From NCBI GenBank assembly GCA_905178155.1, contig CAJINV010000019.1, positions 1,314,007 through 1,327,443 on the forward strand: a DNA stretch of 13,437 nt, written 5' to 3'. Below, in pieces: positions 1 to 13,437 of the stretch. Each line of letters begins with the position of its first letter. Positions within the stretch are counted from its first letter, which is position 1. The translations under genes were made by a program, and so were the position numbers. This stretch comes from Amoebophrya sp. A120 (lineage: Eukaryota > Protista > Dinoflagellata). Below the pieces are notes generated by a model, which saw nothing but the letters and a program-made list of their open reading frames with translations, made no database searches and was not told the DNA's origin.

Positions 1-31
1 TTTCCAGACCCAGACATTTTTACATTTGATA
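1..31. mobile_element. Introner A0 (family A), right TIR only, truncated by window start
   Basis: TTCCAGACCCAGACATTTTTACATTTGATA at 2-31 matches family A right ends. Confidence 0.85.
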
Positions 32-32
32 T

Positions 33-78
33 TTAACATATTTCCGCCCCTGTCGGGACATCAGCAGGGTTACTACGT
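33..78 (+). CDS. Gene 1 exon 1 in window (LTYFRPCRDISRVTT)
   Basis: Lies between elements A0 and A1; open in the frame that continues into exon 2. Confidence 0.7.
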
Positions 79-3000
79 TATCAACTGTAAAAATGTCTGG
101 GTCTGGAAGAATTCATGTTTGTCATGCTTTTCTGGCATGAGTCTTAAATCTGTGATGCACGTTACCCAAGAGCTCCGTTTTTCTGTGATGCAGAAGCGCA
201 GTTTGTCATGCAGAATAGGCAACACCTAGGAGCTCAGAAACTTGTCATGCTGAGTCAGTATTCGTAGCCTCATCATGAGACGCCATCCAGCATCACAAGT
301 TTCCAGACCCAGACATTTTTACTCTTGATATACGTTCATTCCCGGCCCACTGTTCTACTTGTGGTCCGTCGCAGCTTACCTACTCTACCGCGAGTGGACA
401 ACGGCTCTTCTACGTGCTCCTCCGGTGCTAGAAGGAGATGGAACAACGACGAGGACGACCTTGGATAGTTTCAATTCTAGTGGTCATGCCAGTCCGGGAT
501 CGTATTTTTTTGTCTCCGCCGCCTCGGCCGCCTCGCACGTGGGCACCACTACACGCACGGCGCGCGAGATGAATCGCGAGGGGGCCCGTTACCGCACACC
601 CTCGAGTGAAAAGCTTCACGCCGAAAACGGTCGTTTCGATGACTGGGCGATCGCGGCTGCGTCGGCGATGCGCACACTGCCCGGATGCAACGCCAGTCAC
701 GAATATTTGAGGAACGAATTGCGCAAATACCACCCTTATCAACTGCAAATATGTAGTTATTTGAATGCTCCTCTGGAAGGCGGCTGGTAGTAATATCCTG
801 TGATACAACACGTTTTAGATCATACAAAATGAAATCCCTGTCAAAATGTGCATGGACAGCAAGACTAATAGTCCGTTTCCACCGACACTATCTGGACTTT
901 GTCATGCGGGGTACTAGGCATTGATAAACCTCCTCAAAACCTTTTTCGCTATTGCTATTGCACGTCAGCCGTGGGCTCATAACTCTGTAGAAAAGTCCTC
1001 GACGGGCTCTCAACATAACTCACTTCATCAGTGAGTTTATTGCCAGTAACTAGTTATCGACCTGAATAACTCATAACTGTGCGGGGACAAGCTAGCTATC
1101 GGGTTCACGCACCCGCAGCTGCAGTTCATGCAGGACTGATGTCAGTGCCTTACATGCTCCAAGATGATCAGAGAGGTCCAGAATGATGTAGATGGGTCTA
1201 GAGGATCAGCAGTAGGATCATGAGTAGGATCACAGGTGGACTAGAAAGATCCAGCACACGACGGGGAAATCTGCACGGCGCATGTGGCGTCACAGATGAT
1301 CGCGAACTCAGGAAAGTAGTAGCGATGTTGTCGTGGCACGCGGGGCCACGCGCAACCATCTCAGGAAATGCCGACACAGGATATTCAGGCCTACTAACTC
1401 TCTTCGCAGAGAGAGGTCGATCAGGAAACTCTTGTGGGTCTGTCGTGGCGCGACCAGGCACAAACCACACTCACAACCATGACAATGGACATCAAGGGAA
1501 CATAGTGCCAGAATGGCTTCAGGTATGAAGCCAGTAGTAGGAAGAATCATATACATTAGAAATCCGTAGTACCATGACCATGAGGGTACCTCGATAGCTT
1601 AGGAGTGTTCTCTCTGGTTGTAGGACGGCATGTAATCGCTCACGCGACAGTCCTCGACGTTGGCGCGTCCACATACGCTCTTGCGTTCTTAGTAAACATC
1701 CAGAACAAGGCGCATGACAAACACGACATGGAGATGAGTGTACTACAACTTCCACGCCCAGTCAACTACATCTTTGCAATCCATAACCCGCGTCACACGA
1801 CTGACCAGCAGGTTTTGGGGTACGCCCCAGGACCAGAGACGCATGCTCCAGGAGCAGAACGACCACAGAGGGCTTTGCGCAGCGAAGAAGAAGAAGAAAG
1901 AGAAGAAGAAAAAGCCCTTATGTCTACGGCCAGTGACCGGATTGGCGGATCAAGTGACTCCGTGACCAAGGAGCCCACAGACGTGAGCGAGCTGACGAAT
2001 GATTTTCAGCGGCTGAGCCTGCACCACGCCCGGAATCTCTATCGAAAGCTGCACAAAGAAATCAAGGATGACAGATTAACGAAGCGGGATTTTGCGGCGG
2101 GACCTCGGCTCCGCGTGTTAGAAGTTGTAAGCCGACATAAGTGCCGGCGTTTTTTGGAGAGCACGGAGCATCAACGCGCTGTGCGCGAGATCCGGGGTCC
2201 AGCGCCGGAGCGGAGCATCTGGCCTTGGGCAGCGGACATGGAGTTAATGCAGGCGGAGGAAGAACAAAAAGAAAAAAGTACAAAACAAAAAGGAAAACCT
2301 CTGCCCCTTCTTGCGGAGCCGTGGACGCGGCAGGCCCAGTACAGAAAGTGGGGAGAGACCGGGCCAAGGCCAATGCCGCAAGAGCAGGAGTTCAACGGTC
2401 CTGGGGACATGGTGCCAGTGGTTGGAACATCTCGGGGCCGAGATGAATACTACCGGGAAGAAAATCGTAGTGCGCGGGAGAGGAAGGAAAGCAACGCCCA
2501 CGACCTTGCTCAAAAGGCGCAAGAGGTTGGTAAGAAGAAACTCGCGGAGTTCCGCACGGCGGGCAAATCAATACGGGACGAGCAGCTGGCCGCCTTAGAC
2601 CAGGAGGCCGAGCACCTGCCCTGCTGGTGCTATCACGTCGAGCACATGCGCGTGAAACAGGACCAGGTCGACGACGTCCGCAAACTGTTCGCCTACGCGA
2701 GCGCCGGATTCTCGGCCCGGCCACTGGTGAGTCTGAGCGGGATTTGGGTTATCAGGAACGCCCGGCGAGACGAGTATTGGCGGCAATTCCTGCATTCCCG
2801 GAAGTTTGTGGATCCTCTCGCCGGTGCTTCTACCACTGTTTTACAGCACTACGATGTGTATGTACTGCAAATATCGATCTGGGTCTGGAAAGTTGGAATG
2901 CTTGTTTACGAATCGGAAGCCAATGCACACACAGCCAAGCATGTCAGATTTTTCTCTGTGTGGTTCTGTGTTGCGTAGTCCGCATGGGAAACTGCGTTTG

Positions 3001-6000
3001 TGCGTGACACGAGGGGCATGGGAAAGAACTGTGCGGAGACTACAGAACCACGAGGGGCATGCCAAGTACTTATGCATGAAAGGTCTTGGAAGTGGAGCCA
3101 ACGTCTAGATCCAGACACTTATTTGCGTTTGACACTGTGGCTACGGACGTCGCGACCTTCCGGGGCGAGTCTCTTCCAGGGGAGAAAAATCCGACCGCTA
3201 CTGTTGCGGACCTCGTGGCGTATGGTGTCCTTGGTCCCTCTGAAAACAGGCATGCTTTTGAGATCACGATGTTGCGGCCTCTCGTGGCGGTGCTGTCACC
3301 TTCGACCACACGCGGTGCGACGTCGCCGTGGCGCCAGCCGTCAACTGCACACCAGGTTTTGCGTTGGCACGTGCTGGGACCGCATGGGGCGAAATTTTGG
3401 TCGTTGCCTCTGTCTCGTCATTCGGGTCAGCACACTGCTCCTACATCCCCCGAGGAGTCCTCGCTGTCGCCGAGCAGTGGCGCCAGTGCATCGTCGTCTG
3501 CACCAGCGTCTTCAACCGTCGCGGGCGACGGGTCCGCGCCTGAGCAACATTCGGGAGATCCGAACCAAGAATTCCTAACCGCCGCAGCTCAGTTCGAGGC
3601 CCCGGATGACCACGGGTTTGTCAGTGTGGCCCCGTTCGACACTGCCGCGTGGGCCTTGGCAACGGCCTCCGCCACGGGGGCGAAGCGTGTAGCGATGTAT
3701 GCATTGCAAACATGTCTGGGTCTAGAAACACAAACATGTAAACTTCTGATGCGCATTTGAGACCAGTAGAAAAAAATCTGTCATGCATGGAACGCAAAAG
3801 TTGCTCATTTCTTGTCACCAAAAGAGGGACAAACTTGCCATGGGGATAATTAGGCATCGCTTAACCTCCTCAAAATCTGTGTTGCTAGGACTTACATGCT
3901 ACACCTTCTGTGCCATGCACAAACAGCATCACACTCTTCCAGACCCAGACATGTTTGCATTTGATAAGATTAGTAGAGCGACTGCGACGACTTTTCCTGC
4001 TGGGCTTGAACCACGCGATGACGGAATAAAGGATCTAGAGCTTAGTACAGCCACCAACATCATCTTCGACCACACGGACGCGTTGAGCTTCGACTTGCCC
4101 GGCTTGCGGTCTGGCTTCCTACGCTCCAATATCAAAACGAAAAATCCCCCCTCCCCATATCGAAACAGTATGAGTCCGAAAATTTGTGTTGCTGATTTGA
4201 GACCACAAATCACGTCTGTCTTGCAAGAAGACAAGTGCAGGGGCTTCCGGGCCATTATGGAAGCGATTTGACATGCTGCCGGGCCTAGGGGGCAGCCGTT
4301 TGTAATTCCAAACAACTAGACCCAAACGCGCCTACCTAGGCTGAGGATCTGGCTGCGATGTCTTACTGCAAGACAGCGAGAGTTTATTTGTGTACGCAAA
4401 TCCAGCGCCACAAATTTCCTTTTTGATATCGGGAGGGCGGATTTTTCCTTACGATATCCAAACGCGAAGAGGTGCGCGAGAACCCGTTTTACCTGTATTT
4501 CAGCAACGGCACGAATGTCTATGGGATTCTCAATCTTGACATTCTCAACTGTTACATGAATTTGTCATGCAGAAGCACCATCATCATCCTCACGATCAAG
4601 CTGCTCCGCATGACAAATTTGTGAAGGCCTAAACCGTGCCTAAATCTGTGCGGAATTTGTAATGCTACAGATGCAACCTTCCCCCTTCCACTTTTCCCAT
4701 TCTTGCATCACAGGTTCATGTAACAGTTGAGAATGTAACAGTTGGGAACGCCATAATGTCTTGGCCCACTTTCGAGCCATGGAGCGCGTCGGTCAAACGG
4801 TCGGGGGGGCAGCACCACGAACAACACCCTATACGCAGCATGGCGAAGCAAACCGGTTCTACTCACCGTGGTCCTATTTGACCTCTCTGCGGCTGTACCC
4901 GCACGCGGACATGACTGTGCGAGAGCTGGAGGAGGTGGCGCGGGAGGAGGTTGGCACCGACGAGCTGCGCCAGTGGTCGACTCGGCACAGACCACTCGCG
5001 GCACCCACGGTGTGGGAGTGGCAAGAGGCCGCGTCTGGAAGGGACACCTCCGTGTATAAAAATCACGAGACCCCGCAGCTCCCGCCGCCGCGGTTGAGAA
5101 ACTTGTTGACGAAGATGCCGCGCTTGTTTGCCCAGCTGACGGGGAAAATTGCGTATGTCTGCGTGTCCGATCTAACCCGACCGCAGTGCCGAGCGGCGCG
5201 GGGCCGCGATGCGCGTGGGGAGACCATGGACACAGGGATCATGTCTATGCAAGAAAAAAACTGTGTTAGTGTAACTATCTTTGGCTGACAGCATCACAAA
5301 TTGCTCTACATGACAGAGAAAAGCTGTCATGCGTGGCCTGTAAGGGAAAACACACAGGAAAAGAAAACTTCGTGGCTGTCTGGCATGACAGGTGTAACTC
5401 TGTTGCGTGTGCTGCATTACAAAGTTACACTTACACACTTTTTTTCTTCCATAATGTCGTGGGCCGACATGGAGGACGAAATGGATCGGTTTTGGCAAGT
5501 CAACATGGCAGGAGCGAAGAAAGTAGAAGAAGCTTCGGGTGCGCTATGGCATGAACACAAAAAAGCCGTGCTCAAGGCCTACTTGGAACGGCGCCGATTC
5601 GTGGAACGCCAGCACTGCCACTGCGTCCAGCGACTCGCCTATGATCCAGCGGATTTTCAGTGGGCCGTCTACAATCCGAACCTGCATCTGAAACTGAAAT
5701 TAGCGGCGAGTTCTTTATCTGCGATTTCTTTATCTGATATTTCTTTATCTGCGAGCGAGCAAGCGCAACGAGCGCAAGCGGCCGCTTTTTGCCAGGAGGA
5801 GCAGAAGGCCAGTGCCAGCACACGGTTCCTGTACTTTGTTCGGGGTAGAGCAGGAGCAGAGAGTCCGGACACCTACGTGCGGCGGAATTTTCGAGTCGTG
5901 CTGTCATCTTTGGACGAAAATGAATCTTCGAAGACGATGAACCCCGCCGTCGACGGCGTTTGCTTGATGCGGTTACCGGAAAAAACGGCCGAAAGTAGCC

Positions 6001-9000
6001 ACTTCTGTGTCGCGGGGGATGCGGAATTCACTCTGTTAGATTCACCGCGGGGCTGGAGTAGTTCATTCCGACAGACCCGCGCCCTTGCTGAGGCGTTCGC
6101 CTTTCGCGGTACCGACTGGTGCGAGTCTGCTTCAAGGAGTACTAAAACTACAGATGCGTTTATCAAACAAAAAAAGTTCGTCACGATCACTCATGGGCAT
6201 TTTTGCAAGACAAAACTGTCTGTCATGCGTAAAAATGCATCACAGCCACACTTCGAGAGGGATTTCCCTAGTGTTTCTGCAACACAAGGAGAAGTTGTGA
6301 TGCAAAAAAAGATTTGTAATGCAAAACCTGCAACTTAGTGACTGTGACAAACTTTTTTCTCTCCATAGCGTTTCAGTTTACCAACGGGTATAACAAAGGG
6401 CTCGGGTTGCCGCCGGTCCGGGCAGAGATCATGAACCAGGTCGGCGGTGGTCTCCTGCATGGGGATTCGAACCTCGTCCAGTGGTCTTCCGTGCTGGAAC
6501 ACTGCCACTGCGTGCAGAAACTGGAATTCGACCCGTTCGACTATTTGTGGAAGGTCTACGCCCCCACCGCGGAAGACATTGGCAGAACAGATGGCGCCGT
6601 CACGCCGCTACTGCAGGAGCAGTGGTGCTTGGCGCAACAGAAGAAGGGTAACGCGCACCCGTGGTTTGTGCTCTTATATCGGAACCCGAGTAAAGAAATC
6701 GAGGCTTTTCCCCTACTCAAGTCCGCATTTTTTAGTGCAGCTGCATCGCAGGAGCAGTCCTCTGGTGCGTCCTCAGAACAAGTGCCAGGTTATAATTTAA
6801 GTAACGGTTCAGTTCGGTTTAAGATTAAAGCACACACGGATTTAAGTGGCGGAAATAATGGTAGCCGGGTGTGCCTGCAGCGTGTGCGGCAGCGGCGCCC
6901 CTCAGATGAGGAAGGTTTGCGGTACAGACAGCCGGATACGCTGAAGTTTCACTTTCAGAATGATTTCTGGTTCCGGAAGAGTACTAAGGGTAGAAGCGCA
7001 CGACCAGGCTACGATTTCTCACGGGCAGAACCCCACTTTTTCTCCGTCGCTCCATCCTACGTTTTCTCCTCTCCGAGAGAAATTTCGCTGCACGACAAGT
7101 TTGACGAGCAGTGGTGGCTGTGCGATGCGGAGACCCGCGAGCAGCGATTTTTCGACAAGGTTAGATTGTGTCCGTCCCGCGAGCCGCGATGTTTTTGGTC
7201 CTATAGAGATATCGGACGTAAACGACTGGAAACCAAAATCGTGATGGAGGGTTGTCGAGCACGTGGTGGGTCACCGCCTGGTCGTCCCCCGTTAAGCACT
7301 GGGCGGTATTTTTCGCTGGAAGAGAACCCACTGTATTCGGCAGAGAAACCGCCTTATTTCTCGCGGACCTTGGGGCGGTGGTTGATTGTGGTGGCGAGGA
7401 TGTTGCAGCTAGAGTGCTATCCTGTGCAAAACTGCTGAAGTTGATGATGTTAATGGCGTGGCTGTGACACTGGGGGCTCTTCTCGTATGAGCATAAGAGC
7501 ATGATAAGCAGAAGCTCAAGTTTATGACAACTACTACTTAGGAGTCTTCTGATACATTTGCTTTGCATGGCGGCAAGGCAGGGCTCCGTGAGTATTTTGC
7601 TTGCAGCTTCGGAGTCATCATGTGTCGCTGTATATGACCACAAGATATATGACCACAAGATCATGTACCACATCCACAGGTTGCACGTGATAGCACCCCT
7701 GAAAGAGAGTTCTTGGAAACCGCACCCTGTGACGCGGATTCCCGACGATGGACCGACCACGCTATGGATCTGTATGGCCGCGGGCCAAGCGCAAAGCTTC
7801 GGCGCCATCGGGTGGAACAGGATAGGCGTTTTCGTGTTGACTGCGGTAACGACGCTTTTTCTTGGCGTTTTTGTGTTGACTACTTTAAAAGGAGTTTGAT
7901 GTCTTCCACCACACTACGTGACGAAGCCAGCGATCACATGCTAAAGCAGTTGAAGCGCAAGGATTGCCTACTATACAACAATTCTTGTCCACTGCCAGCG
8001 TTTGAGCGGGCAGAAAGTGAAAGTCCCGAGGAGGTATTGGACGAGGCAACAGGCTGCGATGAAGATGAACTACAAATAAATCGGCTGAAAATAAACCCCG
8101 CCTGCAAGTCCGAGGCCTGCGCGCGCGCGTTGGCAGCTTGGAAGGAAAAGTTTAAGGCGGAAGTCTTGCCGCAATGGATGGAGGCAGAATTCAGAAAATT
8201 CTGGACGCAGTATTGGGCTAAGGCCGTTGCGAGGGGGCCTGACGAACTGCACGAAATAAATTCCTGCACCGACGACCGGCATCACCGAATCGCTCCAATT
8301 GCCGAAGTCCACGAAAATACAGCTCGCGGCCAGTTGTCTCTTCCGAAACTACCTGTTCTGGCGAAGAGAGACGAATTAGAGCGCCCTTGCTACGAGTACT
8401 TTCTGTGGAAGTCTGGTGTGTTGTACAAACTAGCCCGTTTTCTGTTCAACCTGCGAATTCGTTCAGAATCAGAATTGGACAGGTGGGACTGGTGGCACAA
8501 AACTGATTTGCCTGACAAAACTCTCGTTGCCGATCCTGTCACTGGTCGCGTACGTCAAGAGGTCCTGCTCGACGAGAGGGACGTCGGGAGGCTACTGCAC
8601 CATTTCGTGCAGCAATATTTTCCGGTCGAGCTTAAGCACCTCGCCGAGGGGATGCTGCAACAAACGGGCTGTGGGGATCATAGGTCGGGCCTGCAAAGGG
8701 GCTCCTGGTCCTTTGCGTCCCCCTCGTGCAATGAGGGTACAAGTTATCTACAGGAAATTTATTCCCGTACACGTACAAATGCAGTTTCTGCATGAAAAAA
8801 CTGGGCTTCGTTCCTAGTTTAGCATGGCAAGTGTTCTTACGCTCCAAATTGGTGAAATTTGTGATGCATCTTGTACATGTACTACGGGGCATTTGTATTG
8901 CATACAACTTCTGGTGAGGGTCCTGCGCTGAAATCGTCGAGTGGTGGTGCGGCCTCGACGCCGGGCGGTAGCGGCTCAGATCCGTCTGGTCCTTCTGGAA

Positions 9001-11231
9001 CACATCACGCTGGTGTTGGGGCAAGTGGTATCGTAAAGAAAAATCCCCCCTCCCCATATTGAAAACGCATCCATCTGAAAATTTGTGATGCACATTTGTG
9101 ACCTCAAATCTTGTCTGTCTTGCAAGAAGGCAAGTCCAGAGAGCCCCCTGCATTTTGCAGGCGGTTTGTGATGCTGTTGGACTTAGAGCATACACGTTTG
9201 TTATGCTAGGCGCCTACGTCAAAACCTCTCGGCCGAGGCTTGACATATGCCTGCAGTCCTGTACTGCAAGACAAATCCGATCTGTGTACGGAAATCCAGC
9301 ATCAGAAACTTCGTTTCGATATGGGGAGGGGGGATGTTTCCTTCTGATAAGTGGCACCGCGACGTCGCCGCCCCGTGCAGCACAAAAACCGCTGTTGTCC
9401 CGTGGGGAGGAGTATGCACTGCAAATATGTCTGGGTCTGGAAGGGTGTAAACTTGTGATGCTGCATCTGGATTCCAAGGAAATCTGTATTGCGAGGCCAG
9501 CAAAAGGAATCTAAATCTAATTGGTGCTACGCTGAGAGTGCATTTGTCATGCGAAATAGGTACCAAGAACCCCTCAAAGAATCTGTGATGCTAGGGCATG
9601 CATCACAGACGTCATGGCCCATGCAAAACGTGCATGACAAGTCTCAGAATCGTTTAGACCCAGACATATTCGCAATGCATAAGGAGTTCGGGCGACGGGT
9701 GGCCGGGCACATGGTCGCCGAAAACGAGCGGAAGCGCAAGGCCTTGGCCTCGGAGTTGCGCCGGGAGCGGGAGCGGGATATGCTGTGGCTGCGGCGGCTG
9801 TGCAAAGAAACCGAGCGGGAAATCGATTGTTCCTTGCGTCCCCGGGCTGTCCGGGTTTGGCACAGCAGCGCCGACGAGAAGTACGGCAACACTCCGGGCG
9901 CGCGGATAGAGAAGTTCAGGGAAAAACAAGAAGAACTCAAGTGCGCGCATCGCATGTGTCGCGAGTTTTTCAGGAGGAAGTGGACCTCCTCCACCGGGGC
10001 AGCATCATCTTCCGACGCGGCAGCAGCTTCTTCGTCAGGAGATCTCGTTCATCCTAGTGCAGGGGAACAAGGAGGTTCATGCAGGAGCAGCATTTTGGAG
10101 CCCATAAATGCGCTAACTCTGTTTCGCTGCAGGCCCCCCGCCGGCATGACCAAGCCGGCTGCGCCAAGTGCTCCTGCGACGGATGGTGGGTCTCCTGCAG
10201 TATCCTCTGGCAGCTTCTACTGCAACTTCGGTGAAGATGTTGAAAAATCCTCATCGCAGCTATTCAACCGACACCTCGGCCTCGTCGACCCATTTTTGGA
10301 CGAAGCTTCGTCGCGGCTGGACGAATTGCGCGACCTTGGGCTGTATGCATTACATACAAATATGTCTGGGTCCGGAAGAGTGCAAGACTTGTCATGCTAG
10401 TCTGGCATGACGCTGAGCTCTGTATTGCGTGGCCAGCGAGAGGTCCTCTTGTCTGTCGTGCAAGAAGGCTGTTTGTCATGCGGATTACGCAACATGGAGC
10501 CACAGAAAAATTTGTCTTGCTTGGCGGCGCATCACCATGCGCTTTCTATTCACCGACATGCATCACAGGTTTCCAGACCCAGACATATTTTTTGCACTCG
10601 ATAGGGAGACGCTGGAGGCCGGGTTTGCCGATCCAGGGGACCGCGAGCGCGCTATCAAAAGGAAAAATCCCCCCTCCCCATATCGACACGAAGTTTCTGA
10701 TGCTGGATTTGCTTACACAAATCGGATCTCTCTTGCAGTCGAGGACTGCAAGCCCATATCAAGCCCGAGTAGAGAGGTGCTGGCCTAGGTGCTTAGCATG
10801 CGACAGGCCTATGCTATAGGCCCAGTAGCATCACAAACCGCCTACATAATGCGGCGGGGCCTGTGGGGTTGCCTCTTTGCAAGACAGGGACGATTTGTGG
10901 TCACAAATCAGCATGGCAAATTTTCTGAAGTGTGTCTTTTCGATATGGGGAAAGGGGATTTTTTCTTACGATACGCGCCGAGGAATTGGCCGCACTGGAC
11001 CCGTGTGGGGCGCGATTGCTGGAATTGGAACGCCGCGTGGATGAGTGCCTCAACTTCTACGTTCCCCCGGACGGAGGTTCTTCGGTTGATGAAGGTGAGC
11101 CCGAGGGTGAATCTGTGCCTGAGGTGGGATGGCATGCTCGCCTGTTTGGGTCGGAATACGACCCGTCATCGGGGGACGACCCGTCGTCGGACGACGCTCG
11201 AAACGACCCGTCGTCGGACGAGGAAGACTGA
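33..11231 (+). CDS. Gene 1: large hypothetical protein, 5'-truncated, about 2232 aa in window, 15 exons: join(33-78,336-736,1791-2858,3140-3697,3972-4129,4462-4519,4761-5245,5459-6160,6373-7417,7698-8744,8910-9028,9355-9412,9687-10343,10609-10652,10979-11231). Junctions can slide within each 5-bp TSD.
   Basis: Manual splicing (element plus one TSD copy removed) is in frame at all 14 junctions. Exon sum is 6699 nt = 2233 codons with no internal stop, ending TGA at 11229-11231. It links ORF-track entries 359, 1605, 3086, 3783, 4761, 5301, 6338, 7713, 8871, 9098, 9489, 10429 and 10932. No recognisable family. Confidence 0.88.
79..330 (+). mobile_element. Introner A1 (family A, 252 bp)
   Basis: 30-bp TIRs at 79-108 and 301-330 (28/30 match); perfect TSD TACGT at 74-78 and 331-335. 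Confidence 0.93.
336..736 (+). CDS. Gene 1 exon 2 (FIPGPLFYLWSVAAYLL...ELRKYHP)
   Basis: Frame of ORF 359..790; joins 1791 in frame. Confidence 0.8.
737..1785 (+). mobile_element. Long introner L (1049 bp), degenerate family A with about 0.7 kb extra internal sequence
   Basis: Ends TATCAACTGCAAATATGTAGTT and AACTACATCTTTGCAATCCATA; TSD ACCCT/ACCCG; shares TAGGCAT...AACCTCCTCAAAA with A3; removal restores the frame. Confidence 0.82.
1791..2858 (+). CDS. Gene 1 exon 3 (RHTTDQQ...VLQHYDV), charged, coiled-coil-like
   Basis: Core of ORF 1605..2978; in frame on both sides. Confidence 0.88.
1884..1913 (+). repeat. (GAA)n-like coding microsatellite, EEEEEREEEK
   Basis: GAAGAAGAAGAAGAAAGAGAAGAAGAAAAA. 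Confidence 0.8.
2859..3134 (-). mobile_element. Introner A2 (family A, 276 bp, inverted)
   Basis: TATGTACTGCAAATATCGATCTGGGTCTGGAA ... TCTAGATCCAGACACTTATTTGCGTTTGACA; TSD ATGTG/CTGTG; the reverse complement of its interior (CATGCGGACTACGCAACA) matches the A5 forward interior (CATGCGGATTACGCAACA). Confidence 0.87.
3140..3697 (+). CDS. Gene 1 exon 4 (ATDVATF...AKRVAM)
   Basis: Core of ORF 3086..3760; in frame on both sides. Confidence 0.85.
3698..3966 (+). mobile_element. Introner A3 (family A, 269 bp)
   Basis: TATGCATTGCAAACATGTCTGGGTCTAGAA ... TTCCAGACCCAGACATGTTTGCATTTGATA; eroded TSD CGATG/AGATT. Confidence 0.9.
3972..4129 (+). CDS. Gene 1 exon 5 (SRATATT...GFLRS)
   Basis: Part of ORF 3783..4271; in frame on both sides. 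Confidence 0.82.
4130..4456 (+). mobile_element. Introner B1 (family B, 327 bp)
   Basis: TATCAAAACGAAAAATCCCCCCTCCCCATATCGAAA ... TTTGATATCGGGAGGGCGGATTTTTCCTTACGATA; perfect TSD TCCAA. Confidence 0.93.
4462..4519 (+). CDS. Gene 1 micro-exon 6 (KREEVRENPFYLYFSNGTNV)
   Basis: 58 nt between elements B1 and C; not in the ORF track; bridges the frames of exons 5 and 7 exactly. Confidence 0.8.
4520..4755. mobile_element. Introner C (236 bp)
   Basis: About 41-bp TIRs with the core ACATTCTCAACTGTTACATGAA / TTCATGTAACAGTTGAGAATGT; perfect TSD ATGTC. Confidence 0.92.
4761..5245 (+). CDS. Gene 1 exon 7 (LAHFRAME...DTGIM)
   Basis: ORF 4761..5288 up to element D1. Confidence 0.85.
5246..5453 (+). mobile_element. 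Introner D1 (family D, 208 bp)
   Basis: TATGCAAGAAAAAAACTGTGTTAGTGTAACT ... AGTTACACTTACACACTTTTTTTCTTCCATA; perfect TSD ATGTC. Confidence 0.92.
5459..6160 (+). CDS. Gene 1 exon 8 (SWADMEDE...KTTDA), first HCHCVQ repeat
   Basis: Core of ORF 5301..6338; in frame on both sides. Confidence 0.88.
5711..5755 (+). repeat. 15-bp x3 coding tandem repeat (SLSAI SLSDI SLSAS)
   Basis: TTCTTTATCTGCGAT / TTCTTTATCTGATAT / TTCTTTATCTGCGAG; frame-preserving. Confidence 0.9.
6161..6367. mobile_element. Introner E (207 bp)
   Basis: TATCAAACAAAAAAAGTTCGTCACGATCACT ... AGTGACTGTGACAAACTTTTTTCTCTCCATA; perfect TSD GCGTT. Confidence 0.92.
6373..7417 (+). CDS. Gene 1 exon 9 (FQFTNGY...RMLQL), second HCHCVQ repeat
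   Basis: Core of ORF 6338..7438; in frame on both sides. Confidence 0.88.
7418..7692. mobile_element. Degenerate introner G (275 bp); can also be read as a GT-AG intron 7414-7693
   Basis: GTGCTATCCTGTGCAA / TTGCACGTGATAGCAC inverted ends; no TSD; removing 280 bp restores the frame. Confidence 0.75.
7631..7660 (+). repeat. 15-bp x2 tandem duplication inside element G
   Basis: TATATGACCACAAGA twice. Confidence 0.85.
7698..8744 (+). CDS. Gene 1 exon 10 (PEREFLETAP...NEGTS)
   Basis: Frame of ORF 7713..8795, open back to 7653; in frame on both sides. Confidence 0.86.
8745..8904. mobile_element. Degenerate introner F (160 bp)
   Basis: TATCTACAGGAAA...GTACACGTACAAATGCA and TGCATCTTGTACATGTAC...TTTGTATTGCATA; TSD CAAGT/CAACT; contains the in-frame stop 8793-8795 that removal eliminates. 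Confidence 0.82.
8910..9028 (+). CDS. Gene 1 exon 11, Gly/Ser-rich
   Basis: Part of ORF 8871..9062; in frame on both sides. Confidence 0.8.
9029..9349 (+). mobile_element. Introner B2 (family B, 321 bp)
   Basis: Family B TIRs; interior colinear with B1; perfect TSD AGTGG. Confidence 0.93.
9355..9412 (+). CDS. Gene 1 micro-exon 12 (TATSPPRAAQKPLLSRGEE)
   Basis: 58 nt between elements B2 and A4; bridges the frames exactly. Confidence 0.8.
9413..9681 (+). mobile_element. Introner A4 (family A, 269 bp)
   Basis: TATGCACTGCAAATATGTCTGGGTCTGGAA ... TTTAGACCCAGACATATTCGCAATGCATA; perfect TSD AGGAG. Confidence 0.93.
9687..10343 (+). CDS. Gene 1 exon 13 (FGRRVAGH...LRDLGL)
   Basis: Core of ORF 9489..10400; in frame on both sides. 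Confidence 0.86.
10344..10603 (+). mobile_element. Introner A5 (family A, 260 bp)
   Basis: TATGCATTACATACAAATATGTCTGGGTCCGGAA ... TTCCAGACCCAGACATATTTTTTGCACTCGATA; eroded TSD GGCTG/GGGAG. Confidence 0.88.
10609..10652 (+). CDS. Gene 1 micro-exon 14 (TLEAGFADPGDRER)
   Basis: 44 nt between elements A5 and B3; bridges the frames exactly. Confidence 0.78.
10653..10973 (-). mobile_element. Introner B3 (family B, 321 bp, inverted)
   Basis: Interior is the reverse complement of B2 (GAAGTTTCTGATGCTGGATTT vs AAATCCAGCATCAGAAACTTC); perfect TSD CGCGC. Confidence 0.93.
10979..11231 (+). CDS. Gene 1 terminal exon 15, acidic tail (...DPSSDEED*)
   Basis: Part of ORF 10932..11231; followed by AT-richer non-coding sequence. 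Confidence 0.83.
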
Positions 11232-11303
11232 GGATGTCAAAAATTATGCATGGGTCGGAATACGACCCGTCGTCGGACGAGGAAGACTGAGGATGTCAAA
11301 AAT
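11147..11303 (+). repeat. Tandem duplication of the gene 1 3' end including the stop codon
   Basis: 42-bp copies at 11203-11244 and 11262-11303; 21-bp copies at 11147-11167 and 11251-11271; GACCCGTC x4. Confidence 0.88.
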
Positions 11304-12551
11304 GCATGCAAAGACCGTTGACGCATGTGCGTTCTTCTACAAGGAAATCGAACGCGTTATTAGAAATTTAGATAATTTTTCCGAGAGCGCTGATGCAGCG
11401 GTTTACTGATAGTGTAGTTCTGCTTTGTAGTTTTCCCCTGTCCTTTTGAGCAGCCGTTTGTTCAGAACCTCCACCAAAGTGGGCTATCTACAAGAGAAAT
11501 ACCCCTTATTTGACTTGTTCTGCACCTGCAGTGAAGAAGTCTGAAAAATTTTAATTGTCATCTGTGCTCTCCTTTTATTTTGGTGCGGGGAGAAAGAGCA
11601 TTACACATAAGCAACACGATGTTGGCTTTCTTGCACATGATGGGGATTTGGAAGAACATACAAGAATGTTTTGATGTTGATAAACATACTACGTGATATT
11701 ATGAGATGGATTTGGAGATTGACATTCATTGATAATATTCGGTCACGCACCGCAATTTCTACATATTGCATTCGTACTAGTAGCAACATAGCCTTCATTG
11801 TTTGTGGAATTTATAAAGAGAACGTATCTTCATCATGCAAAGAATAGCGCAAGCCCTTGTTGTAGATATCATATACATACACTCATCATCGGTGTTGGTG
11901 TCCACCAGTTCTGTTGTTTCTTTTTAATGCGAAGATATGCGATGCTGCACGCTTGTGCCGTGTTGGAACCAATCGCATGAAAACACGGAAAGAAGATAAA
12001 GGCCGGGGATATTTTTAGACAGGTCGGAGAACGACCACAGGTCTCTGTACTTGAAGCATATTGAAGACAGCCGTTTGTCCTCAAGAAAAAACACCTGAAT
12101 TCGCACTGCACGACCAAGATTGAAGCAAACGGAACGCCAAACTAGATGAAACTCGGCCGGCGCATTGAAGGGTGAGGTGTAAGAACAAGGTCCACCTCGC
12201 TGGTTCGTCACCGCGTTCTGCTGTGCGTGTCCTTTTCTTGCCATCTTCACGGAGGTCTTTCGCTTCTGCACTGTTTTCTGGGAGGCTGCAAGAAGTGAGA
12301 TCGATACGTGGATGACCTGTTTTCTTTTCGGGCACATAAGTAAATCAGAAATGTTGAGAGGTGGTAATTTCAGAGAGGAGCAGTCACCGTCAAAGATTCC
12401 TGATCCAACCGCCGCGCAGATGAGCTGCAGCGAGAGATAAGAATGCGAAAATTGGCTCGGCTTTGAAGCCCAAGTGATGTAATTACAATCGAGAAGTGAT
12501 ACATCATATTGATCACGCGTGGCAATATTAAGTCTTTGATGTTTTCAAAAG

Positions 12552-13297
12552 ATGAAGAACGCACCTCCACAAGCCGACGGAGAAAAGCGCAAAATCGCGG
12601 CCTTGTTGAACGAATGGGACCGCACAATAGGCCTGTTGAACGAAGCACTGCGCACCGGAAACGCCGCCGATGCGGAGCGGCTTGCGGTACAGCTGGCGAA
12701 TCGCGCGGCGCCTGTGCTGGCGCATGTGAAAGTTGACCAGCGTGCTGGGACGACGAGGAGAAGTGGGACGTCGAGACAACACGGCGGACTACAGTTTTAT
12801 CAAGAAGACGAGGAAGTATTGTACTTCTCCGGCTCCAGCAAAACTTGGATTCCAGCGACAGTGACAAGTGTCATAGCTCCTCCCGCTCGGAGCGAAATCG
12901 GTGTACCGACTATCCAAGAAAAAAACGTTGATAGTGTAAATTTGTGATGCGCAACATGCAAGATGATTGCGTCTGTCATGCTTGGCATGCGTCTTAGGGT
13001 CCATTAAAGGGCGCTTTCACGTGCTATCTGCGCATGACAGGTTTTTGCTGTCATGCCAGGCAAACTTGTAATGCTGTTCTTCCACCAGAAAAGTTACACC
13101 TACAATGTTTTTTTCTTGGATACCGACGTACACACTGGATGTGAAGCCGGGTTGGGAAGTGGAGAGGTGGCGGCTAAAAAAGAAGGATCAGCAACAAGGT
13201 TTTTTATCTGAAGACGATGTAAATCAAGATAATGATTTATCCGAAGACTATTCTCTCTCTACGGACTTCTCCAGCTGCGCCACCGCTGGCGGCCGCG
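12552..13297 (+). CDS. Gene 2, 3'-truncated: join(12552-12910,13128-13297); hypothetical protein with a probable Tudor/SH3-like beta-barrel
   Basis: ATG at 12552. Removing 12911-13127 fuses ORF 12552 to ORF 13105 in frame (IGVPT|YTLDVKPG). The pattern VLYFSGSSKTWIPATV...YTLDVK...WRLKK resembles Tudor/Agenet-type barrels (by eye). The start codon is uncertain because an AG directly precedes the ATG. Confidence 0.78.
12911..13122 (-). mobile_element. Introner D2 (family D, 212 bp, inverted relative to D1)
   Basis: TATCCAAGAAAAAAAC ... GTTTTTTTCTTGGATA; perfect TSD CCGAC; reverse complement aligns with D1 (CATGACAG..AAA.CTGTCATGCG). Confidence 0.92.
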
Positions 13298-13437
13298 TAT
13301 CAAAAGGAAAAATCCCCCCTCCCCATATCGAAACAGTATGACTCCGAAAATTTGTGTTGCTGATTTGAGACCACAAATCACGTCTGTCTTGCAAGAAGAC
13401 AAGTGCAGGGGCTTCCGGGCCATTATGGAAGCGATTT
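13298..13437 (+). mobile_element. Introner B4 (family B), truncated by window end
   Basis: 138/140 nt identical to B1 4130-4269 by manual comparison. Confidence 0.92.

Follow-up and report, generated by a model that had tools for sequence, protein, structure and literature searches.

We show here that in a 13,437-nt stretch of the genome of the dinoflagellate Amoebophrya sp. A120 (contig C19, positions 1314007-1327443; "the window" denotes this whole stretch) the transposon-like elements that interrupt coding sequence are transcribed with their gene and removed from RNA, while the DNA keeps them. Very probably they are A120 introner elements, that is, short, non-coding insertions resembling miniature inverted-repeat transposable elements (MITEs) that carry a 5-bp target-site duplication and are removed from RNA. 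The phenomenon matters in that tens of thousands of transposons sit in coding exons and are made harmless by exact removal from RNA without a conserved splice signal.

The element class is already known, having been described in the same genome by Farhat et al. 2021 (BMC Biol 19:1, PMC7789003) and reanalysed by Gozashti et al. 2025 (PNAS, PMC12130899), and therefore the window adds an instance rather than a discovery. Farhat et al. 2021 report for A120 that more than 60% of introns are non-canonical, with hairpins, that no U1 small nuclear RNA (snRNA) was found and that 29,850 repeated introns make up 17% of the assembly (PMC7789003). These introns have inverted repeats of 8-20 nt starting TAT-N7-AAA, direct repeats of 3-5 nt at their borders and a splicing mechanism described as unknown (PMC7789003), in line with an earlier note on the window, made from the sequence alone, which had mentioned TAT-N7-AAA introners of Amoebophrya and called their excision machinery unresolved. 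A120 introners are diverse, with "tens of introns in a single gene" (Gozashti et al. 2025, PMC12130899). To the published class we add the 5-bp target-site duplication, a preferred cut register (-1/+4), function in both orientations, a subterminal octamer, a parallel with SOS splicing of animals and an under-annotated gene.

Elements in the window

The window holds 15 complete and two cut elements, all located where the earlier note had claimed them. Their ends are terminal inverted repeats (TIRs) of the form TAT(C/G)...(C/G)ATA, with E2 (3' end GACA) as the sole exception; a TAT[C/G] start is found in 31/32 termini, and the published TAT-N7-AAA motif fits 26/32. The 5-bp direct repeats flanking the complete elements are perfect in nine, match at 4/5 positions in three, at 3/5 in two and at 1/5 in E8, i.e. 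at 3/5 or more in 14/15. A blind scan for TAT..ATA with a direct repeat of at least 4/5 and inverted ends of at least 11/16 gave 11 matches in the window, against a mean of 0.31 and a maximum of 2 in shuffled windows. The MITE features present are TIRs, a target duplication of fixed length, absence of coding capacity and a size of 160-330 bp (1,049 bp for E1). The elements are listed below with the coordinates of their core, from TAT to ATA, and their left/right flanking repeats.

1-31: A (family F1), 3' end only, truncated by the assembly gap in contig C19
-220 to 31, 252 bp: full copy of A on contig C16; repeat TTTAA
79-330, 252 bp: B (F1); repeat TACGT/TACGT
737-1785, 1,049 bp: E1, unique as a whole; repeat ACCCT/ACCCG
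2859-3134, 276 bp: E2 (F1, inverted relative to E12), 3' end decayed to GACA; repeat ATGTG/CTGTG
3698-3966, 269 bp: E3 (F1); repeat CGATG/AGATT
4130-4456, 327 bp: E4 (F2, the CCCCCCTCCCC family); repeat TCCAA
4520-4755, 236 bp: E5 (singleton in the window); repeat ATGTC
5246-5453, 208 bp: E6 (F3); repeat ATGTC
6161-6367, 207 bp: E7; repeat GCGTT
7418-7692, 275 bp: E8, decayed, single copy in the genome; repeat AGTGC/GCACC
8745-8904, 160 bp: E9; repeat CAAGT/CAACT
9029-9349, 321 bp: E10 (F2, opposite orientation to E13); repeat AGTGG
9413-9681, 269 bp: E11 (F1); repeat AGGAG
10344-10603, 260 bp: E12 (F1); repeat GGCTG/GGGAG
10653-10973, 321 bp: E13 (F2, inverted relative to E10); repeat CGCGC
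12911-13122, 212 bp: E14 (F3, inverted relative to E6), inverted ends 16/16; repeat CCGAC
13298-13437: E15 (F2, 98.6% identical to E4), 5' part only
13298-13620: full copy of E15 in the genome; repeat CCGCG

Restored reading frames

Removal of each element together with 5 bp joins the exons in frame at 15/15 junctions, as the earlier note had stated along with an open 6.7 kb of exon. The product is a single open frame of 2,230 codons (39-11229, TGA stop at 11229-11231; 6,693 nt of exon), followed by a second open frame of 180 codons (12540-13296). Exactly the element plus 5 nt is lost, and therefore the pre-insertion reading frame is restored. A further test is independent of the assigned element coordinates: only one frame is open in each exon of more than 100 nt, and 11/11 independent frame relations of neighbouring exons equal the predicted removal length modulo 3, with a chance expectation of (1/3)^11 (~6e-6). 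The features of the two genes are as follows.

39-11231, + strand: gene 1, 15 coding exons within the window
37-78, 336-736, 1791-2858, 3140-3697, 3972-4129, + strand: gene 1 exons 1-5
4462-4519, 4761-5245, 5459-6160, 6373-7417, 7698-8744, + strand: gene 1 exons 6-10
8910-9028, 9355-9412, 9687-10343, 10609-10652, 10979-11231, + strand: gene 1 exons 11-15
11232-12551: spacer between the genes, lower in G+C
12552-12910, 13128-13297, + strand: first two exons of gene 2, which extends past the window

The probable start ATG of gene 1 lies ~270 nt upstream of the window, on contig C16. No TIR/direct-repeat element was found in the spacer by the window scans, and the earlier statement that the 1.3-kb intergenic region is free of elements thus stands.

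The exons of gene 1 are colinear with an annotated A120 paralogue of 1,848 amino acids (P0006) at 26-63% identity, down to the 19-residue exon at 4463-4519, and gene 1 is therefore real coding sequence. Together with spliced RNA-like contigs and deposited proteins, this supports, for gene 1, the earlier view that the genes are functional.

Removal from RNA

Run coverage was examined over 3650-9649. Run X1, which behaves as genomic DNA, has a depth of 42.6 over exons and the same depth inside the single-copy element E8, and one of its contigs continues unbroken over 6341-8784, across both E8 borders. Runs X3 and X4, from another study, are RNA-like and have zero depth within E8. Their contigs join 6155 to 6368 (E7; 6156-6367, 212 nt skipped) and 7416 to 7697 (E8; 7417-7696, 280 nt skipped), in both cases without a mismatch. 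Further RNA-like contigs break off or resume at the borders predicted for E3 (3968), E4 (4124), E6 (5240) and E9 (8743, where contigs of both RNA-like runs stop), and at E11 a loose contig end at 9412/9413 continues with 9688 onward. On the protein level, the deposited P0001 reads exactly across the E7 junction (...STKTTDA joined to FQFTNGYNK...), and P0007 reads exactly across E12 and E13 and finishes at the predicted stop. Since the DNA run keeps the elements, the RNA-like contigs skip them and deposited proteins cross the junctions, removal takes place in RNA, which the earlier note had considered most likely.

Three further RNA-seq runs from 2026 with the same species label (X9-X11) have essentially no reads on the locus; this scarcity may reflect another strain, host-dominated libraries or a gene that is nearly silent there.

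Position of the cut

We define the register as the number of bases of the left repeat that are retained in the exon. With perfect repeats all six registers yield an identical mRNA, and imperfect repeats are therefore needed to tell them apart. The repeat differences of paralogue introns 8 and 10 are synonymous, so the protein cannot reveal their register. Five introns are informative:

E3: registers 1-4, from a contig restart at 3968
E8: registers 4-5, from the junction 7416/7697
E9: registers 4-6, from contigs ending at 8743
E12: registers 4-5, from the Leu at the junction in P0007
Paralogue intron 5: register 4, single solution

All five agree on register 4 alone, which would put the cut between the fourth and fifth base of each repeat copy, 1 nt ahead of TAT and 4 nt past ATA. 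At this register the first and last bases of the intron differ between elements, and the cut sites have neither GT-AG nor any fixed dinucleotide. The only GT..AG pair at any register within the repeats is that of E8 at register 1 (7414/7693, in frame). E8 as a GT-AG intron was ruled out, given that the contigs of both RNA-like runs pass over this pair; GT-AG junctions, named earlier as a finding that would speak against element removal, are thus not what the RNA-like runs use at E8. Register 4 is a preference and not a law. The apparent position of the cut, fixed relative to the inverted ends (-1/+4) regardless of orientation or flanks, may be a useful clue to the mechanism.

Families, orientation and structure

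The window elements fall into eight groups (three multi-member families and five singletons), where at least six families had been claimed. Genome-wide copy number, which the earlier note proposed to determine, came to at least 772, 2,645 and 759 first-look candidates for the E3, E4 and E9 families, respectively; E8 is unique in the genome, and E1 is unique as a whole. A set of 37 other E3-family copies has a perfect 5-bp repeat in 24 cases, a 4/5 match in nine and a 3/5 match in four. Seven of the nine E3-family copies with a clear frame on both flanks are in frame after removal of the element plus 5 bp, two of them sense and five antisense. This frame-consistency test was used in place of one based on the longest open stretch across the join, which was dropped for lack of discrimination because G+C-rich sequence is often open by chance. 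Inverted copy pairs also occur inside one transcript (E10/E13 and E2/E12). Either orientation permits removal; owing to the inverted repeats at the ends, the RNA begins with UAU and finishes with AUA whichever way the element lies.

The predicted fold of E7 RNA is a long hairpin (z = -4.3), and for the decayed E8 the terminal stem alone is kept in the predicted fold. A search of Rfam matched no known RNA family. Within 4.8 kb of element sequence we counted 41 copies of the octamer TGTNATGC or its complement (8.5 per kb; for example in the stretches 120-297, 4563-4712 and 5291-5421), versus a single one in 8.6 kb outside the elements (0.12 per kb). The octamer is common to families that are otherwise unrelated, often ~35-45 nt from each end, and this sharing points to a common factor; it may be where a transposase or a removal factor binds, or merely part of the hairpin.

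E1 is ~4 times as long as the other elements. Three segments of its interior (~391-498, 521-732 and 730-937) match other loci, namely a repeat cluster on contig C1 (C1:14512188-14514375) and a copy on C28, and E1 may on this comparison be a composite or contain captured sequence.

A candidate mechanism

The observations are consistent with a simple sequence of events. An element inserted into a coding exon in either orientation and made a 5-bp target-site duplication. In the pre-mRNA its inverted ends would pair and place the two cut sites side by side, with the sites set by their distance from the stem or from the TAT/ATA ends and not by exon sequence. Such placement would explain the equal handling of both orientations and of unrelated families. 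Given removal at the RNA level, we regard it as about evenly balanced, perhaps leaning slightly in favour, that this takes place by a structure-directed cut-and-ligate route analogous to animal SOS splicing. More specifically, and only tentatively, we propose that the ~30,000 introners are removed by a precise, high-throughput relative of SOS splicing that recognises the stem, cuts at a fixed distance and joins the exons through RtcB without the spliceosome. A factor would recognise the TAT-N7-AAA stem, possibly helped by the subterminal TGTNATGC repeats, cleavage would fall 1 nt ahead of the stem and 4 nt beyond it, and RtcB would then join the exons. An RtcB gene is present (C5:6115035-6117073); short introns divide this gene, the only RtcB gene of the genome, into at least five pieces. 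If this proposal is true, a mechanism that has been open since 2021 could be put to the test, and the range of SOS splicing would extend from an imprecise animal safeguard to the main intron-removal route of a protist.

Several points weigh against these readings. RtcB is expected in any eukaryote, and a six-frame search gave no match to CAAP1 or AKAP17A RNA-binding-domain profiles, with no positive control and in genes that are split by introns. The annotated 5' site of paralogue intron 12 lies 6 nt inside the element, and A120 splice sites have been described as variable (Farhat et al. 2021, PMC7789003). In animals SOS splicing is imprecise (Zhao et al. 2025, PMC12779559), and almost the complete set of spliceosome proteins, along with the snRNAs except U1, is present in A120 (Farhat et al. 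2021, PMC7789003). The RNA label of X3 and X4 is only a guess. Of the RNA junctions predicted in the earlier note, those of E7 and E8 were found as skips and those of E3, E4, E6, E9 and E11 as borders, while those of B, E1, E2, E5, E10 and E14 were not seen in RNA here. Contigs drop rare variants and cannot show minor isoforms, and the raw RNA run X9 has one partial read on the locus, from which spliced versus retained fractions are not derivable.

Alternative explanations

A U1-independent variant of the spliceosome, again given removal at the RNA level, is a serious possibility, if one that falls clearly short of even. In its fuller form, in which such a spliceosome tolerates any boundary bases and is guided by hairpin or inverted-end signals as proposed for tunicate MITE-derived introns, we find it somewhat doubtful. 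A120 possesses the U2, U4, U5 and U6 snRNAs in addition to most of the spliceosome proteins, with few missing, and the inverted-repeat/direct-repeat layout is also seen in 15% of its canonical introns (PMC7789003). In tunicates, 95% of introns lack GT/AG borders but are nonetheless spliceosomal (PMC13326754). Against this stand the first and last intron bases at register 4, which are target-site bases and differ for each element, and the usable in-frame GT..AG of E8 (7414/7693), which is left unused. For catalysis the spliceosome normally relies on the two terminal bases of the intron.

The transposon-like ends and the exact removal would also fit excision from the DNA of the expressing nucleus, as with the internal eliminated sequences of ciliates, in which case the element-free contigs of X3 and X4, with their guessed label, would be DNA or copies of it. 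However, the DNA run covers single-copy E8 at exon depth with one contig over both borders, no element-free joint of the locus is among the DNA joints listed (the best supported ones), and the published gene models, which leave the elements out, are based on transcriptomes (Farhat et al. 2021, PMC7789003); we consider excision from DNA very improbable. Still less credit goes to a dead gene riddled with MITEs whose joins are in frame by chance. Gene 1 lacks a Pfam domain and, in exon-wise searches, a homologue outside A120, but its 6.7 kb are open only upon exact removal, all 11 frame relations fit, it is colinear with the 1,848-residue paralogue down to a 19-residue exon, and both spliced RNA-like contigs and deposited proteins exist. 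Equally remote is the idea that ordinary GT-AG introns near the element borders mimic element removal. A GT or an AG is present at some registers and E8 has the pair at register 1, but the repeats of the other elements offer no GT..AG pair at any register, both RNA-like runs give the register 4/5 product of E8 and not the GT-AG product, and the Leu of P0007 at E12 is that predicted for register 4/5.

Relation to known systems

The window elements agree with the published A120 introners in genome, motif, inverted ends, direct repeats, RNA-supported removal without GT-AG, thousands of copies and tens of introns per gene, and there is no difference in kind. SOS splicing takes DNA transposons out of the mRNAs of Caenorhabditis elegans and humans without involving the spliceosome (Zhao et al. 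2025, Nature, PMC12779559); paired inverted terminal repeats set it off whatever their sequence, and it needs AKAP17A, CAAP1 and the ligase RTCB (PMC12779559). The paper makes no mention of Amoebophrya. A120 elements, too, are removed from mRNA while kept in DNA and are rarely bordered by GU-AG, and in both systems the sites lie in or near the repeat ends, with inverted-repeat pairing in A120 being a prediction of folding. SOS splicing lacks precision and frequently breaks the reading frame, whereas in the A120 window 15/15 joins are in frame and the pre-insertion sequence is restored; its sites are heterogeneous, whereas the contigs of two A120 runs give identical junctions. The link to A120 is hypothetical; SOS splicing, described in animals in 2025, offers named candidate proteins to test.

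Introners of Micromonas, Aureococcus and free-living dinoflagellates are non-autonomous DNA transposons with TIRs and target-site duplications (Huff et al. 2016; Roy et al. 2023; both as cited in later work). Insertion makes the intron and the element plus one target-site duplication is removed, as in A120, but these spliceosomal introners use canonical GT-AG borders built partly from the duplication, which the window elements do not. The internal eliminated sequences of ciliates likewise are transposon-derived inserts in coding sequence that are removed exactly; they leave the somatic DNA, whereas A120 DNA retains the elements (E8 depth equals exon depth). Euglenid nonconventional introns lack GT-AG borders and have ends that pair to bring the exons together, two traits shared with the elements described here. 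Their sequences are unrelated, and we know of no TAT-N7-AAA ends or 5-bp repeats in them.

Paralogues and annotation

P0006, the paralogue of gene 1, is encoded on contig C7 and adjoins a tandem copy (C7:437790-448258 and C7:422379-436054, 92-93% alike). Over 10 introns of the window's element class interrupt each copy, among them a nested insertion of a 392-bp element within a 756-bp element. The tandem copies have introns in common, and most of their intron positions differ from those of window gene 1. P0006 is uninterrupted at the sites of E4, E5, E6 and E7, and conversely the paralogue introns near residues 790, 812, 1230 and 1278 fall where gene 1 is uninterrupted. Sites are thus occupied in one paralogue and empty in the other, and therefore most insertions postdate the duplication.

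Homology searches were run with single exons, one by one. Pfam gave no domain in the gene 1 exon translations, and the word-index protein, all-representatives and Atlas searches gave no relative of these exons outside A120; judged by these comparisons, the protein belongs to a lineage-specific family without a Pfam domain. The public annotation represents the 2,230-codon frame by two fragments only, P0001 (135 amino acids, partial) and P0007 (228 amino acids, starting at an internal Met near 9953), both deposited as "unnamed protein product [Amoebophrya sp. A120]" / RCC4398, which leaves the greater part of the gene without annotation. The locus shows that public annotation under-calls long, weakly expressed genes of A120.

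The exons 8910-9028 and 9355-9412 (39 and 19 codons of low complexity), which E9, E10 and E11 delimit, are missing from P0006, whose residues 1606 and 1607 are adjacent where these exons would fall; the RNA-like contigs contain both. In-frame repeats of 15-18 nt are found at 11150-11221 and 5706-5754, and the spacer duplicates, at 11252-11303, the final ~52 nt of gene 1 together with the stop codon.

Genome context and mobilisation

The A120 assembly has a length of 115,520,608 bp and contains the entire window twice at 100% identity (C19:1314007-1327443 and C16:1882037-1895473). The C19 copy is a contig tail behind a gap of 1,514 N, the C16 copy is internal, and the region upstream is duplicated too. 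The double copy is probably assembly redundancy and not biology. Both cut elements, A and E15, are complete in the genome.

The fixed 5-bp duplication would suit an integrase-like enzyme, and TIR-flanked elements with integrase-like frames have been reported in A120 (Gozashti et al. 2025, PMC12130899). A search of the genome with the integrase (rve) profile gave many long open frames, and one multi-copy family was examined. It was rejected as the autonomous partner, being a long terminal repeat (LTR) retroelement and not a TIR element.

C8:3694608-3701653: LTR retroelement, 7 kb
C2, near 4741500-4748600: copy of the LTR retroelement (copies 98.7% alike)

The retroelement has LTRs of 365 bp, an open frame of 1,986 amino acids with an integrase domain, 5-bp target duplications (GTTTA, AGGGT) and the termini TATGACAC...TTCACA. 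It matches the introners in duplication length and also begins with TAT.

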